A stretch of DNA of 64,000 nucleotides from Schizochytrium sp. TIO01 (taxonomy: Eukaryota > Protista > Bigyra: Labyrinthulomycetes): positions 2,475,648 through 2,539,647 of the forward strand of contig SMSO01000014.1 of assembly GCA_004764695.1 (NCBI GenBank). The letters are read 5' to 3'. Under the pieces are notes generated by a model. It was not told where the DNA came from. It searched no databases and worked only from the letters and a program-made list of their open reading frames with translations. Position numbers and translations under genes: made by a program. This document shows positions 11,646 to 19,150 of the stretch, piece by piece. The number at the start of each line of letters is the position of its first letter. Position 1 is the first letter of the stretch.

Positions 11646-13767
11646 TTTTTGTGATGATCATGATGATGACAAACAAGGATAAATTTCTAATGGTGATGAT
11701 ATGTTTGATCGATGCTCAAGGCCGCCTGGCAAATTCCTCGGCAAGCAGGAACAGGCCGGCTGCAGAACGTTTCCCTTTCCTACTAGAGATGCAATTTTGT
11801 GTGTGTTTGGTTAAATATATTTACTCTACCGTACCATTCTCATCGCCTTTTAAAAGTGAACTTAGTAGAAAAATAATATGCAACTATTTTTTGTTTTTGT
11901 AAAAAAGTTTAAAAAGGTTCTTATAGAGATGAATCATAATAGCAATAGAAATAATTGCTATTCTATTTTAAAAAGAAAAGAAGTTAAATTAGAATGCACA
12001 GTCCAGTTTTAAGGAAGCCATAGAGAGAGGGATAATTGTCGCATGTAGCGCTAAAGTGATAGTTGCCAGAGTCGACAGTGCGTCCAAGCTGTTGCCGAGA
12101 TGAAAATAGTAGTGCTAGAAATCCTAGGAACCGATCAATCCATCTAATCAAATACTTGAAAACATTCATTTTGACAAAGGGAGCCTTTTTGCTGCGCCTG
12201 CGAAATCATTTGGAGGTTTAGACTTTAAAAAAAAAAAACCGAAAAAAAATGTAACGCATACATCACATTAACGAGGGTCAATATGGATTGTGTACTAACC
12301 CCCGATAGGAAAGGTTGTTAATTAATATCAAGATGAAGCGAGATCTACAATAGGGCATAATAAACTTTATGTATTCGTTTGGATTGTACAGGTATAGGCT
12401 CTCTATAAGTCTTATGCATCGTGAAAGTGCTTCTTAGACATGCAATAATAACATTAGTACTTGGATTTCCCGTGATACAAAGCATCGCGATATCAATTCA
12501 TTGTAGATGGTGACATGCAATACTTTTCGCGATCAGATCAGATAGCTTCTTTCCAAACAAGGATATAGTCTCGCACTATATTTTCTTAAAATTATTCTTT
12601 CTTTTTCTTGTCCTTTCTATTTGACGTTTCCTTCGTTATTCCTGGATAATTTTAGTCGCGCCATCAAAAGCTGTGCGTGCATAAGTATATTTCTTCAAAA
12701 AGTACTATCGAAAGTCTTTTCTTTCAAGTTTGCAGAAATAATATGTCATCCCTCTTCAATCATCATACACCCACTAAGGCTGCGGACTAGAAGCAGGAGA
12801 TAGAAACAAAAAATTCGTAGTGGTTCATGCGAAGGTCCACTTGAGTCTTCAACAGAAACTAGAGGTGATGACTACCAAGATTAACAGCTTCGCTCTCTTG
12901 TTAAGAATAACTGACCGCATTGTTAACATGACTTTGTTTCTGAAGTATCATTCTTGTTTCGGATGTATTGTTGAAAATAATACACTTGGGGTATTAGAAG
13001 TTGTCAAGTTTAAAGTATATTTCTAATCTAAAAATCTGATCAACGAAAAAGTCTGATCGTTTACAACAATTCAAGGGCTTTAAAAAGTTCTCATTCATTC
13101 ATTGTAATATTTACAATCTAGAAGTGCGTTTTTGCTGGATCCGGTGTGGAGGAGGCGTTGAATATTATATTGAAGGCACCCAACAATGGAGTATTAGGGT
13201 CCTGGCGAGTTAAAGGTAAAAGAGCTTACAACAAATGCGCCTCGCTCTGTCAACTTCGCAACATGAACGAAAGAACTGTTCATTGAATGTACGCTTATGA
13301 TCTATGCGCTGTACCTATCGTCCTGTCAAGAAAAGCACGAGACACCTTTTCAAAATATAATCAAACGTAAATTCCTAACAAGACACGGGGGGTTGTGTTG
13401 AACAGATACAAACTAGACACACGAAGTTTAGTGCACTTCATCCAAATTGGAATTGCCTCAACAAATTATAGCATAATCAATAATTATTTCCACAGTGGAG
13501 TTAACATTTGTAGGCTCTGACTCTATCTAGCACTTACACATATTTGTGCGTAAGTATGTTTTTTTTTTTTTAAACTTGAATCGCTACAACTTCATAATAT
13601 TTCCCAATGAAGAGTTTATCTTGTTGAGGTTACGTCAGTGATGATAAATCATTGTAAGCTCAGACCATCAAGCGAAAGGGCAGAAACATAGAATTCCAAT
13701 TACCCCCTCAAAGAGTCCAGGTTGTGACTGTGAGACGTTGTCTGGCTGATAATTAAAATCTGTTCTG

Positions 13768-14436
13768 TCATTTAGAAACCCATGATTCAGGGACCATTCT
13801 AAGTTGCTTGTGAGGTCCTAATTTTGACAGATTTTGCCATGTAGGCTCTAGCCATTCCCCAGTTTTTTCGCAATAACCAGCTCGCACCCTACGCTCACCA
13901 ACTGGAGGTTTAGCATCGAACCTCTCGGGATTATCAGAAAATAATGTGGACATGCCGACGTAAAGGATTGCCCAAATTGGCAGGAGCCCAACGATCGCCC
14001 AGCGCAAATTTTTACTGAGATATACCTCAGCTGCATTGAAAAATCGCCCTCCGAAATACCGATGGTCGCTACGAAAGGGTTTCCGTGCTTCGTGTGTGCC
14101 CTTTAATCCAGTTGCATGTCGATAGTTAAATCTAGCATCAAACGCACTGCGTTTCGCAGGATTAGACAGTACCTCATAAGCAGTACGCACTCGTTTAAAC
14201 GTGTCAGAGGCATGGGGGCTCTGATTAACATCAGGATGGCACTCTTTGCATCGCATTCGGTATGCCTGCTTGATTTTCTGTACATCTGAATCTGGTTCCA
14301 CCCCAAGGACTCTGTACCAGTCTACTTCGTCATCTTCTTCCATCCCAAACCATCTTGACGATGTTGCAAAACTGCGACGGTTGATTTGTTCTTGTCTTCC
14401 CTTTGTGGCCAGCTGTGTGACCCCCAAACGCAACAT
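13768..14436 (-). CDS. J-domain (DnaJ type C) protein, probably mitochondrial, one transmembrane segment
   Basis: DWYRVLGV..IKQAYR..CHPD..AYEVLSNP.KR..FD; presequence-like MLRLG..RRSFATS; hydrophobic WAIVGLLPIWAILYVGM. Confidence 0.9.
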   Translation of the reverse strand: MLRLGVTQLATKGRQEQINRRSFATSSRWFGMEEDDEVDWYRVLGVEPDSDVQKIKQAYRMRCKECHPDVNQSPHASDTFKRVRTAYEVLSNPAKRSAFDARFNYRHATGLKGTHEARKPFRSDHRYFGGRFFNAAEVYLSKNLRWAIVGLLPIWAILYVGMSTLFSDNPERFDAKPPVGERRVRAGYCEKTGEWLEPTWQNLSKLGPHKQLRMVPESWVSK

Positions 14437-14564
14437 GGCTGGCGCTACTAGTAAGACTGGGCAAGGCTGCTACTTGCGTGGCGGATAGCTTCTTTGCATC
14501 GCTCTCGTCACTTTCTAGGTAGGTCTTGATTTTATTTTGGCCCAATAACATCTAAATAGGGTAA

Positions 14565-14720
14565 CTAGCACTTACAGTAATTAACCTATAAAGTTTGCAA
14601 AACTTGCAATTCCTACGGTGCTAAGGCCCATTCGCAGGTAAAAAATCAAAGAGACAATACAACTTTTAAATCATGTTCTTCGACAGGGAACGCAAAAGAA
14701 TGTCTCTGGTGACGCGGATA
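14565..14720 (-). ncRNA. Candidate omega-RNA (right-end RNA) remnant of the Fanzor2 element
   Basis: Mostly positional: overlaps and follows the Fanzor stop codon. Contains a short hairpin TTGCAA-GTT-TTGCAA before a GG. No covariance test possible. Confidence 0.35.
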
Positions 14721-16486
14721 TCACAATCGGTTACATGTTGGCAATTGGAGCATTTGAAAACCTTGGATGTTTCGAGCTTGTTATGAATGGTACCACATTC
14801 ATGTCTTTGAAGTTAATCCTCTCGGCAAATAACAAATTTACACCAAGAAAAAATCTTGTCTCTGTGAATGAACGCTGGACGGAAGCCAAAGGGACCTTAA
14901 CGACATGACATTCGAACTGTCTTACTTTTGATCCATCCTTTTTAATTTGTTGACCATCTGAGGTTTCAAAAGTAGGCAAAAGGATGACACGGTAGTTTTC
15001 ACAGAGTCAGAATGCAAGTTTGCGGTGAATCTCGGTAGTCTTGCTCTTGCTCTTGCGGAGCGCGCGTAGGTATGCTCGTCTTAAGGCAGTTTTGCTTTTT
15101 TTGTTTGAACCAATTTGCTCTGGATTTTGTCGGCGCGGTGACAAAGAAAGGATATTGTTGTTTTGTCTTCTTCTGTTGCTGAAAGACGATTCTGGCCAGA
15201 TTGAGGTTGACTGTAAAGATGGAGGCAACGGGCTTGACGAAGGCTTAAGAATGTTGATTTAATAGTTAACGAACTGCTGTCCTGGAGAATGAATTCCAGG
15301 ACAGATGGATTCATGTAATAATTAAGGAGGTTAAGGCATTTTTGAAAGGGGTTAGAGATAATCGATGGGGTTAGGTTAATTCAACTTCTTCAACCATCGA
15401 TTCATGTTACACCATACTTGGTTGTAGGTAATGTGTAGTCACACTTTGAACTTTTGGCTCTGGTAGCCACAAGGATCTGGCCGCCTATCTTGCTCTATTG
15501 TAATTTGCTATGCCAGTGAGGGCGTCACAAAGAGACACCAAGAACTCGAGCAATGCCTTGTCCACTAGTTCCTTCGATTGGAGAACTCAGCATTTGTGTC
15601 GCGCTTAATTGCTTGACCATCAGCGCCCTATATAATCTGGAGTGAACATACTCCTGGGTCCAAGGCAATTGTGCTATGGTGCGCACTAGTTGCATGATGC
15701 TTTTGAGTGTACGTTTTCTTTATGAAAAAAATAGAAGTAAGCATGACCATGACGGTTCAATTTCAAACGTACGGCATTGGTTACTTGGCAGGCGAACGTT
15801 TCTTTGTGGGTACGAAATGTCTTGAGAAAGAGTGTCGTTTCACACTTCATTTTGCTCCAGTCGCAACATCCAACCTCGAAAATCTGGGTTTGATCAAGAT
15901 TTGTAAGAAGAGCGAACGCCAAATTCCTTCTTGGAGACTCACTCCTCGATTTTGGCCAAACCAATATTGAGGACTTTGAAGGCATCGACGATTCATAAAT
16001 CGCACACAACTTTCGTTACTTCGAAGATCCATTCAAGCGCACCCACACTTTCTCTAAGGCTCACTGCTCTTTTTTTTCTATAGCTATCGCCGAACATTTA
16101 AGGATTGCCTTCTTTTTCTTTCTGAGGACTTGCTTCCTTTTAGGATCCTTCCTGGCGCATCCATCTGAATCAGGACCACAGCTTCGTCTTTACGTTTGGG
16201 AAAATTATATTGAAAGTCAACACCTATGTTGCAAGCTCTTCTGGTAAACCATTTCTTAACTTGAATGCGTTGATCTTTCAATGGATTGATACGAATTCTC
16301 CTAACACGAACTAAATCATACCCCTTCTTGGTCATCTTGTGTGCCTTCACGCGCGATCTCGCCCTCCTCACTGTGTCGTCGCGGTTTATTTTTGCGCTGC
16401 TCGTTTTCCGTGATGCGACGCCACGAAGACGGCGATGGTGTCAAGTTGATCTTTTGTGAAGGTGTCAGAGTCTCCACCATGCGCAT
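14666..16486 (-). pseudogene. Fanzor2 (IS607 TnpB-like RNA-guided RuvC nuclease) pseudogene
   Basis: N-terminal VRVRRIRINPLKDQRIQVKKWF. RuvC-I TIALDPGV (D at 15658-60). Then LCHRADKIQS and EIHRKLAF*LCENYRVILLPTFETS. RuvC-II VICRED-TSKT (E at 14819-21). Zn finger ECGTIHNKLETSKVFKCSNC. RuvC-III TDCDI..RDILLR (D at 14720-22). Stop at 14666-68. Many stops and frameshifts; start uncertain (ATG at 16486, 16480 or 16335). Confidence 0.9.
15177..15592. mobile_element. 416-bp nested insertion, solo-LTR-like (TG...CA)
   Basis: Termini TGCTGA...TCAGCA (6-bp inverted). Flanks TCTGT (15172-76) and TTTGT (15593-97) form a 4/5 target-site duplication. Excision restores the Fanzor frame DGQAIKRDT|EEDKTTISFLCHRADKIQS. 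Confidence 0.7.
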
Positions 16487-16970
16487 CTTGGCTTTCCACT
16501 GCGACTTTGGCAGCTTTCCTTTCGAGAAGGTGCTCAAAGAGGTCCACAGAGATTCCACAGAGATTCACGCAAGTCGGCCGCGGTGCGTTATCACAACCTG
16601 GCCGCTGCCTCAGGCGTCCAGTAGGGCGCGCAAGCCCTATCTTTTGAAGTTACCCCGCTATCGATGTCTTTATTGACGTTGGAGGCGTCTGGATAGGCAC
16701 GTTGGAGATCACCAAGTTGGCATTTGAAGTTTTCGTTTTGCTTGGCGGATGACATTCTGGTGTAGATAATGAAACAGTCAGTGCTGAGTTGCGAGCAGCC
16801 GCGGAGCCACAGCCATAGATATGGGTTCCACCTCGTCACTCATGTATGCGCGATTGCCTTCGGGGAAGCATCCGAAAGGTACTTGCTAAGACACCAAACT
16901 TCTGGTTGAAGTACTTTGCTGGCTTGTATTGTATGTTTGATTCACTTGGTGGTTCCTTGGACCATGCCAT
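16316..16970 (-). pseudogene. tnpA: IS607 TnpA (MerR-like HTH + serine recombinase) pseudogene
   Basis: ATG at 16970: MAWSKE..YKPAKYFNQKFGVLASTFRM (HTH). Catalytic IIYTRMSSAKQ (Y.R.SS..Q). Then KDIDSGV-NFKR*GLRALL, VVITHRGRLA*ISVDLFEHLL and TIAVFVASHHGKRAAQ. Lesions include an 11-bp tandem duplication (16544-16565) and an extra A in the run near 16390. Confidence 0.9.
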
Positions 16971-17962
16971 TTTCTTACCTAGCCTCCAGTTCTTGAATAA
17001 TGATATCATTAGTATGGAATAGACACTTCCATATGGAGATTATTCAAGTTCTAGTGTTTGCATAGGCGCAGTCACAGTTCTCTAGCTAGGCACCTTGCAC
17101 TGATAGAGCTGTGCTCGGCGGCGACTCCATCTCCATCAAAGAGTGCTTTTCTGTTGCAACCAGTGTATGCTGTTTTTTTTGTTTGTTTTGTTTTTGCAAA
17201 TCATCTGTGTCAAGAGACGTTTGGAGTAGATCATAAACACTGGATAGATAGATACCTACCTCGCTATGTAGTCGAATTCCACTCTTTCATAAGCCGTGAT
17301 TAGTTCTTTGTAACAACCATTTCACTTTTTGCAATTTCAAGTTGAAGCAAATCACCCAGGTGCTCTCAGTAGAGAAAGTTCTTACTGGAGCTCAGCTTAG
17401 CAAACAATAGTTCCTAGCTTGAGAGAAGTCGACGGTGCATGATGAACCAACAGACTATCTTTTTTTTATTTTTAATACTAGCTAGCTACGTAGATGCAAA
17501 AACAGAACAAGCAGATCATGAGACCCCAATGTTTCATGGAGTGATACAGAATGAGACAAAATAAATTTGCTGAACCTGCTCTCCTGATGGAGACTATCTA
17601 GTAGACGGTTTCCCCAAGACTTCAATGTTATGTAAAAGCAAAAATAGAATAGAGTAATCCTGCCAAATCACAGTATCTACGGTCCTGTTCGCCATGGCCT
17701 TTAGAAGGCAGAAAGTGTATATCGTAGTTAGGAGCTTTGCTTGATAGCAAAACTAATAATAACTACGTTCAAATCCTAGCGGAAAAGAAAATGTTGACCA
17801 GTCCGACGGATACGGCAGCAGGACTGCAAATCTTCTGCCACACCCAAAACTGATTCAAGCACTCCTTTCTTAAGCACGTGACTTTCAACAAATTTCGTAC
17901 TGCTTCCAGTGGAAAACACACGACGCGACACGAAGGCTGTCGAAAGAAGAGTTGCAGGCACG

Positions 17963-19150
17963 ATGAAGGTGCAGAAGATGCAGCTTCGCATTGATGAAGA
18001 GGAACTAACAGACCTGCGCAGACGTTTAGAGACCTTTCGAGAGCCTGACCCCGGCCCTGGAGCGGATAGTTGGGATTATGGCCTTCCAATTGGGTTCGCC
18101 CACAAAATGCATCATTATTGGTTACATGAATTTGATTGGCGAGCAGCTGAGAAGAAGATTAACTCTTTTCGGCATTACCGTGTGAACCTTGGTGACAACT
18201 ACAATAAAATAGGCATTCACTTCGTTTTTGCTGCACCTGAAAAGGGTGCAAATAAATTACCTATTCTGCTACTACATGGGTGGCCCGGAAGCTTTTGGGA
18301 ATTTCACAAGGTTATCCCTCAACTGGTCGAAGCCGGATTTGCAGTTGTTGTGCCATCTTTACCTGGCTATGGCTTTAGCGACGCTCCACAAGAGCAAGGA
18401 TGGTCGATATTGAGGGTGGCAGATGCCCTTGACTCTTTAATGAGGGGTCTCGGGTATCCTCATTATTATGCTCAAGGTGGTGATTGGGGTGCAGTAATCT
18501 GCAGAGTGCTTGGTTCTTTTCCAGACAAATACGGCTGCAAAGCCCTTCATTTCAACTTTTTTCCATGTCCAAAGCCACTTCAAGTTGATCTAAGCTCTCT
18601 TTCAGAAGATGACAAAGCCAAAATAGATCGTGCTCGAGGATTCTCGCATGCCGAAACCGGGTACCAGGCTATACAACGTACGCGTCCTCAGACGTTGGCC
18701 TATGGATTGACGGATAGTCCAATGGGGCTCGCTTGTTGGATTAGTGAAAAGTTTAGCGCGTGGTCTGATACACAGGGAAGTCATGATCCGACAGTTGCTA
18801 TCAGTATGGATGATATGCTCACGAATATTTGCATTTATTGGTTTACTCGTTCGATTGCTTCGTCTGTTCGATTGTACTATGAAACAATGGGCCTAGGGAA
18901 ATTCGCTCCTGTTCGGATTGCGAACGTCATTGTTCCATGCGCAATTGCAGAATTCCCCAAAGAAATAAGCACTATGCCAATGGCTTGGGTAAAGGAGTGG
19001 TATAATGTAAAGCAATATAGTCAATTTCAACAAGGAGGCCATTTCGCTGCGCTGGAAATGCCCAATGAGCTGAGCAATGATATTACTTCATTTTTCAATC
19101 AACGCGAGGCTGAAAGCTCAAATGAGTATGAAGTCCATTCCAAAATGTAA
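17963..19150 (+). CDS. Epoxide hydrolase (microsomal EPHX1/EHN-type alpha/beta hydrolase), possibly peroxisomal
   Basis: EHN N-domain (FDWR..E..IN.F), HGWP oxyanion motif, SLPGYGFS, nucleophile QGGDWGA, RLYYE, FPKE, GGHFAALE; C-terminal SKM is PTS1-like. First ATG at 17963 (track start is GTG). Confidence 0.92.
   Translation: MKVQKMQLRIDEEELTDLRRRLETFREPDPGPGADSWDYGLPIGFAHKMHHYWLHEFDWRAAEKKINSFRHYRVNLGDNYNKIGIHFVFAAPEKGANKLPILLLHGWPGSFWEFHKVIPQLVEAGFAVVVPSLPGYGFSDAPQEQGWSILRVADALDSLMRGLGYPHYYAQGGDWGAVICRVLGSFPDKYGCKALHFNFFPCPKPLQVDLSSLSEDDKAKIDRARGFSHAETGYQAIQRTRPQTLAYGLTDSPMGLACWISEKFSAWSDTQGSHDPTVAISMDDMLTNICIYWFTRSIASSVRLYYETMGLGKFAPVRIANVIVPCAIAEFPKEISTMPMAWVKEWYNVKQYSQFQQGGHFAALEMPNELSNDITSFFNQREAESSNEYEVHSKM

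Follow-up and report, generated by a model that had tools for sequence, protein, structure and literature searches.

A probable fossil IS607-Fanzor2 transposon and its extinct and living relatives in the genome of Schizochytrium sp. TIO01

Can a series of broken reading frames in a protist chromosome be read as the remains of one transposon that carried an RNA-guided nuclease? The question is raised by a 64,000-nt stretch of the labyrinthulomycete Schizochytrium sp. TIO01 (assembly GCA_004764695.1, contig SMSO01000014.1, positions 2,475,648 to 2,539,647 of the forward strand; hereafter the window). For this stretch an original prediction, made from the letters alone, had proposed a dead IS607-Fanzor2 element at 14585-17050, namely a serine-recombinase transposase gene (tnpA) followed by a TnpB-type nuclease gene. 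Between 14.5 and 17.1 kb the minus strand of the window has no long open frame, and the peptides quoted in the prediction are spread over three frames. We find that window positions 14569-17068 (minus strand) are very probably a dead copy of an IS607-family DNA transposon with Fanzor2 in a protist nuclear genome, and alignments with its relatives indicate that this fossil is one complete element, with both ends kept and no working frames. As a locus it is unremarkable, being a further member of a well-known kind (IS607-Fanzor2).

Identity, limits and setting of the fossil

We searched the window's own assembly (64 Mb, 37 contigs) for relatives of the locus. The DNA search returned a second decayed copy on the same contig, as well as more than 40 copies of a 416-bp repeat, and family searches returned many copies in which a complete IS607 transposase stands beside a TnpB-like open frame of about 660 codons. 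At least nine copies have both frames open, which bears out the expectation of intact relatives in the same genome. The intact element used here for comparison (locus L022, positions 114-2319, about 2.2 kb) is delimited by the points at which 18 copies (89-99% identity) diverge. Its TnpA (232 amino acids) matches the Resolvase profile with 72.5 bits, and intact TnpA reaches 145 bits on NF033518 (curated cut-off 110). Its Fanzor-like frame (646 amino acids) matches Cas12f1-like_TNB (PF07282) with 50.3 bits and HTH_OrfB_IS605 (PF12323) with 37.2 bits, both above cut-off, and the best NCBIfam model for the family nuclease is IS607_TnpB.

When compared with the window by tblastn, intact TnpA (residues 14-230) matched 16946-16325 (E 9e-26), and the intact nuclease matched in two parts, residues 1-469 at 16945-15583 in collinear pieces (summed E 3.6e-66) and residues 464-646 at 15179-14669 (summed E 7e-39). 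Aligned as DNA over its whole 2.2 kb, the L022 element is 65-68% identical to the fossil (77% in the tnpA part, 64% in the remainder). The arrangement proposed from the fragments, a serine-recombinase TnpA and then a TnpB/Fanzor2-type nuclease gene downstream on the same strand, is recovered in this collinear match and lies inside defined ends. The features are as follows.

14569-17068, minus strand: whole fossil IS607-Fanzor2 element (end-to-end DNA alignment with intact L022 114-2319 and with 10 old fossils)
16971-17068, minus strand: left end and 5′ leader, reaching to the tnpA start codon, which is kept (alignment with L022 114-227)
16320-16970, minus strand: tnpA pseudogene, MerR-like helix-turn-helix (HTH) and serine recombinase (tblastn; fragment matches to Resolvase and NF033518)
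15593-16945, minus strand: 5′ part of the Fanzor2 pseudogene, residues 1-469 of the intact 646-residue frame (collinear tblastn pieces, codon check)
15177-15592, no strand assigned: inserted 416-bp dispersed repeat (more than 40 genome copies, 82-86% identity; termini and target-site duplications compared in 19 copies)
14669-15176, minus strand: 3′ part of the Fanzor2 pseudogene, residues 464-646 (tblastn; fragment matches to PF07282 and NF038280)
14569-14668, minus strand: right-end remnant, at the expected position of the omega-RNA scaffold (right-end alignment, folding)

It could be argued that the resemblance is a chance stitching of frames and no transposon relic at all, since single fragments of the fossil score only E 0.004-0.013 on profiles. 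Piece 16594-16839 alone gives E 0.013 with Resolvase and E 0.0094 with the IS607 transposase model (NF033518), and piece 14669-14812 alone gives E 0.0039 with Cas12f1-like_TNB (PF07282) and E 0.0051 with IS607_TnpB (NF038280). The intact paralogues pass the profile check suggested with the original prediction (on NF033518, Resolvase, PF07282 and PF12323); because the fossil fragments are sub-threshold, the identification leans on these paralogues, and the fragment matches are concordant hints, not proof. Against chance, however, stand the three tblastn matches in the correct order and 65-70% DNA identity over 2 kb between the fossil and about 35 other copies, which make this explanation vanishingly improbable.

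The left end (17068) and the right end (14569) of the element were placed by direct end comparison among old copies. Ten other old fossils, lying in unrelated flanks, align to the window copy from the first base to the last and have the same two ends; the left boundary is common to the old fossils L052, L055, L061, L062 and L063. The right end reads ...CTGTAAGTG. The fossil is bracketed by a TG in the flank (17069-70) and a TG that forms the final two bases of the right end (14569-70), and a dinucleotide repeated at both junctions is known from the literature as the trace of an IS607 serine-recombinase crossover. The limits first proposed lie inside the element, and the true limits are slightly wider; the 416-bp repeat had been missed. 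The 2,500-bp fossil consists of 2,084 bp of its own sequence and the repeat. The left end and leader are 67% identical to L022 114-227, with a 16-bp deletion.

That the copy is dead, as had been proposed, is evident from 23 indels of non-multiple-of-three length relative to the intact frames, at least 10 stops in the nuclease gene besides 2 in tnpA, and a broken right end. The tnpA pseudogene keeps its ATG (16968-70) and the catalytic-serine motif YTRMSS (Ser codon 16750-52), and is damaged by 8 frameshifting indels, by its 2 stops and by the loss of 32 bp from the HTH. The quoted peptides were found on the minus strand, IIYTRMSSAKQ and KDIDSGV in 16594-16839 and VFVASHHGKR in 16389-16649. The YxRxSS motif of an IS607 serine recombinase with an N-terminal HTH is thus kept (IIYTRMSS), the HTH itself being affected by the deletion.

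The fossil sits in a 3.5-kb divergent intergenic region, with a DnaJ-domain gene on one side (DnaJ domain 75.9 bits; ATG at 14436) and an epoxide-hydrolase gene on the other (EHN 100.4 bits, abhydrolase 69.2 bits). IS607 elements with TnpB are typically bacterial or viral, and relatives of this one occur in cyanobacteria and on giant-virus contigs, as would be expected if the stretch were a contaminant or an assembly chimera of such DNA. The fossil stretch is, however, present in 20 public runs (12 studies). In four independent runs, each from a different study, contigs span both the DnaJ-side (13700-15002) and the epoxide-hydrolase-side (16389-18200) junctions, and the same four runs bridge both junctions of the repeat; the bridging contigs differ from the window only by scattered single-base changes and small indels. 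Furthermore, the fossil carries an insertion of a host repeat of which the genome has more than 40 copies, dozens of paralogues lie on many assembly contigs, and the GC content of the fossil resembles that of its surroundings. With a host repeat inside it, the fossil must have been a normal part of the host chromosome for a long time. A chimera, which the original prediction had itself raised as a concern, is unsupported and highly improbable, and the proposed location in a eukaryotic chromosome between ordinary host genes holds: host-gene flanks, the host repeat inside and the bridged junctions place Fanzor2, together with an IS607 TnpA, in a eukaryotic nuclear genome.

Catalytic residues and relatives of the nuclease

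The codon check found all three acidic codons of the RuvC nuclease where they had been predicted. The RuvC-I Asp codon is GAC at 15658-60, within ALDPGV (HSTIALDPGVCSL); the shifted RuvC-II Glu codon is GAG at 14819-21, within FVICRED, with a stop and a frameshift directly after it; and the RuvC-III Asp codon is GAT at 14720-22, within TDCDIRVTRD. In addition to RuvC-I, the 5′ part of the pseudogene holds the overlap with tnpA in the +1 frame and the HTH_OrfB-type start of the TnpB core. The 3′ part ends with a stop codon at 14666-68.

The RuvC-II Glu of TnpBs is located about 50 residues N-terminal to the zinc finger. For Fanzors and the related bacterial 'pro-Fanzors', the defining features are a DPG motif at RuvC-I and a Glu shifted C-terminally, to six residues before the finger (10.1101/2023.08.09.552727). 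The DPG motif is invariant among the aligned relatives of our family. Intact copies read CQESYTSKTCNEC at the shifted Glu, about six residues before the zinc finger, and its E, T, S, K, T and C are invariant in the alignment with relatives; the fossil retains this Glu as a codon. Since the shifted Glu defines Fanzors and the alignment around it is invariant, the Glu of the original prediction is the Fanzor one. We considered whether the Glu at 14819-21 was misassigned and dropped this idea, as it matches the shifted Fanzor Glu of 10.1101/2023.08.09.552727 and not the canonical TnpB site.

Besides the shifted Glu, the family keeps a Glu at the canonical position (LPKFETS, residues 540-548 of the L022 protein), which in the fossil is found at 14965-67 (LPTFETS). 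Most aligned relatives have Glu or Gln at this position, and the mimivirus Fanzor2 has Asn.

The zinc finger of the fossil is partial, as had been noted from the sequence: it reads RHEC...CSNC, the first Cys being lost, and the DRD motif is now DCD, so that the window copy lacks both the C4 zinc finger and the RD motif of Fanzor2. The finger is present in the sister fossil L021 (PF07282, E 1e-10) and in intact copies (50.3 bits), and its failure in the window copy is decay and not the mark of a different family.

With the intact nuclease as query, 973 cluster representatives were matched at E of 1e-30 or lower, and the best of them was 46% identical; the ten nuclease representatives that we looked up all come from metagenome or run assemblies. 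The closest solved structure is 9b0l_P (PDB 9B0L), the mimivirus L79 TnpB-like protein (ApmFz2, a Fanzor2; E 2.7e-18), and among the chains that the PDB search listed (E up to 1) none is named Fanzor1. This search and the NCBIfam match to IS607_TnpB place the nuclease closer to Fanzor2/IS607 TnpB than to Fanzor1. Giant-virus relatives, which the original prediction had also anticipated, are present on large viral contigs at 24-38% identity. Bacterial relatives, at about 28-31% identity, are mostly cyanobacterial and fit the pro-Fanzor description (10.1101/2023.08.09.552727). In a protein tree (FastTree) metagenome and large-virus sequences join the protist family in one clade, and the cyanobacterial clade is separate (support 96-99). 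The suggestion that the family might be uncharacterised stands only for the family in this host: the kind is well known, and Fanzor2 in stramenopiles (Phytophthora) was already listed by Bao and Jurka in 2013 (PMC3627910). Our literature search found nothing on Fanzor in thraustochytrids.

The two best 'bacterial' relatives (35-38% identity), L146 (NZ_JAHCKK010000207.1, 2116 bp) and L147 (PIVJ01000273.1, 1994 bp), are element-sized contigs in metagenome-assembled genomes labelled Hydrogenophaga and Bacteroidetes, and they cluster with the eukaryote/virus-type clade. Both are therefore probably mis-binned eukaryotic or viral DNA.

With the Fanzor2 systems of IS607-type eukaryotic and giant-virus transposons (PMC3627910; PMC10530073; PDB 9B0L) the family shares a serine-recombinase TnpA upstream of the TnpB-like nuclease on one strand, the DPG at RuvC-I, the shifted RuvC-II Glu, the CxxC...CxxC finger and the (D)RD motif, a structured 3′ end (predicted here) and the multi-copy state in a eukaryotic genome. 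It differs from them in that the window copy is a pseudogene, in that the family is only 24-38% identical to its giant-virus relatives and, as regards ApmFz2, in carrying Glu (LPKFETS) at the canonical TnpB RuvC-II position, where that protein has Asn. The cyanobacterial pro-Fanzor IS607 TnpBs (10.1101/2023.08.09.552727) likewise have DPG and the shifted Glu, a TnpA(Ser) partner and a near-complete overlap with tnpA. In contrast to them (about 28-31% identity, separate tree clade), the protist family has a eukaryotic host and a basic stretch, KKRARTKARK, resembling a nuclear localization signal before the core.

Subfamilies, crossover dinucleotides and overlapping frames

A DNA tree of 32 near-full-length copies fell into two groups. 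The old group comprises 11 fossils, including the window copy, all with many stops; the nearest neighbour of the window copy is L021 (76% identity). The second group, on a branch of 0.17, holds two intermediates and 19 young copies, including those with both frames open. On this evidence the old clade of at least 11 full-length fossils is extinct, while the younger clade still has intact copies.

Young copies end in ...CTAAGAG and usually have CAG before the left end, whereas old copies end in ...CTAAGTG and have TG before it. TG stands at both junctions of the window fossil and of most old copies, and AG at those of young copies; few of these junctions are available, and they are decayed. The core dinucleotide thus appears to be TG in the old subfamily and AG in the living one. 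Bacterial IS607/ISXfa1 (GG insertion and a GGG transposon-adjacent motif, TAM) inserts at a matching dinucleotide without terminal inverted repeats or long target-site duplications; it has the dinucleotide at both junctions, and the base preceding it is one in the empty target and another in the right end. The protist family may share this mode of insertion, with TG or AG apparent in place of GG. In ISXfa1 a GGG/CGG logic lets TnpB spare occupied sites. In the protist family the base before the dinucleotide is C in the target and G in the right end, a difference that may mirror this sparing.

The nuclease frame of intact copies begins within tnpA and covers nearly all of that gene in the +1 frame (L022:228-2208), and the same overlap is seen in a cyanobacterial (Lyngbya) locus, L150:2718-4479, and in a giant-virus locus, L069:2577-4536. 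Among loci with a resolvase-motif frame, 50 of the 52 from bacteria and 50 of the 53 from viruses have the overlap, always at the same offset (median length 554-602 nt). Among young copies, changes in the overlap fall on the three tnpA codon positions as 28/24/28, with no third-position excess, as compared with 85/62/127 and the usual excess in the nuclease-only part. The conservation of N-terminal motifs (STPE, LWSCTxTDL) is a shadow of tnpA YARVS and VVxxxDRL and is not independent evidence; the open frame and the codon-position pattern are independent evidence for the proposed overlap coding. In the literature searched we found no description of a nuclease overlapping tnpA in the +1 frame, nor of a TG versus AG crossover difference within a clade. 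We lean slightly towards accepting both proposals jointly, namely that dual coding, with the N-terminal about 200 residues of the nuclease lying over tnpA, has been maintained all the way from cyanobacteria, via giant viruses, to this protist, and that the extinct and living subfamilies differ by TG versus AG. If true, the TG/AG difference would imply co-evolution of the target choice of the transposase with the TAM of the nuclease.

Mean pairwise identity among the 11 old fossils is 0.60 overall, and the old group looks star-like in the tree, with uneven conservation among its members. This unevenness implies that much of the divergence arose under selection in lineages that were then living; for the same reason we rejected dating of the window copy from its terminal branch (0.19). 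The best-conserved blocks (minus strand) are the tnpA start with its first 11 codons (16936-16970, 0.89) and the tip of the right end with a UGCAA hairpin (14571-14605, 0.82). The tnpA-start block is nearly identical between the old and young subfamilies as well, and may be a translation-start or recombinase-binding region.

Several of these observations weigh against the identification of 14569-17068 as a dead IS607-Fanzor2 element with the history set out here. The profile matches of the fossil fragments all fall below curated cut-offs; conservation among the old fossils is uneven, and part of the 35% divergence from living copies predates the death of the copy, so that it gives no readable age; and the crossover dinucleotide is read from a handful of decayed junctions.

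By analogy with the literature and from the anatomy of the copies, which together suggest recombination at TG, RNA guidance and homing, a live element would work as follows. TnpA, with its N-terminal HTH and resolvase domain, would excise the double-stranded element and reinsert it by crossover at a matching dinucleotide. The Fanzor2 encoded downstream, a TnpB-like nuclease with DPG in RuvC, shifted Glu, zinc finger and DRD, would be loaded with a structured right-end RNA whose 3′ extension reads into the flank, and would cut empty or target sites, promoting retention or spread of the element. The window copy belongs to the old subfamily, with ends TG/...CTAAGTG as against (C)AG/...CTAAGAG in the living one; it landed between the DnaJ and epoxide-hydrolase genes, lost both frames and the putative guide-RNA hairpin, and was later hit by the 416-bp repeat. 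It is now inert as a transposon.

Being one of dozens of dead transposon copies, the window copy has its value as a marker. It shows long residence of IS607-Fanzor2 in this protist lineage, where an extinct clade (at least 11 full-length fossils) lies beside a living one (at least 9 intact copies). With both clades in one host, this host could serve to study what Fanzor2 does for its own transposon in a natural eukaryotic setting, and a comparison of the old and young subfamilies could draw on natural differences in their ends, in the target dinucleotide and in the hairpins of the right-end RNA.

The sister fossil (L021:3046-5014; G000:C13:1239045-1241013) lies on the same contig, 1.25 Mb away; it is broken, with zinc finger and DRD intact. 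Directly upstream of it, an inverted 66-nt piece matches a young-type right end (L021:2937-3001, 85% identity).

Right end and inserted repeat

The right-end remnant of the window copy (14569-14668) retains the terminal 35 nt or so with a small UGCAA...UUGCA hairpin. The 13-bp main hairpin is destroyed, its 5′ arm being gone, and about 12 nt are deleted. Intact right ends are predicted to fold into three hairpins, namely one of 13 bp, a short one and a terminal one. RNAalifold, run on right ends that included decayed fossils, gave almost no consensus structure, because pairs are disrupted in the fossils and the registers differ among the young subfamilies; single-sequence folds were used in its place. 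The folding z-score of the fossil right end was +0.29, no better than shuffles, and those of intact copies were -4.29 and -5.99. Compensatory changes between young subfamilies in the first two right-end hairpins were seen by eye and are uncounted against controls. The folding predictions indicate that no working guide RNA is possible from the window copy. Contigs of low depth from a probable RNA run cover parts of the fossil; they are indistinguishable from DNA carry-over, and we do not claim transcription.

At a distance of 133 bp, the remnant precedes the DnaJ start codon (14436) in the same orientation, and its last 35 nt or so are well kept (2 changes; the block scores 0.82 among old fossils as against 0.60 overall). 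This could mean that the remnant was co-opted as a promoter or 5′ region of the DnaJ gene, or as a small RNA. The block is, however, equally conserved in fossils at unrelated sites, which ties its conservation to the transposon lineage rather than to the DnaJ locus; moreover, the scaffold hairpins are gone from the remnant, and the contig of the probable RNA run over DnaJ stops at 14486, short of the element. We consider co-option very unlikely and take the remnant for the decayed right end of the transposon.

The 416-bp repeat splits the nuclease gene and does not occur in the sister fossil L021 or in intact copies. We take it for a solo long terminal repeat (LTR), or solo-LTR-like, or else for a miniature inverted-repeat transposable element. 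No full-length parent element with two such repeat ends was found in the assembly. Two repeats 1.26 kb apart on contig C9 were considered as the LTRs of one element and rejected as separate solo copies, since they are 84% alike and the first has its own target-site duplication. The repeat in the fossil has TG...CA ends with a 6-bp terminal inverted repeat (TGCTGA/TCAGCA) and is flanked by a 5-bp target-site duplication (TCTGT at 15172-76, TTTGT at 15593-97); 18 other copies have perfect or near-perfect 5-bp duplications at unrelated sites.

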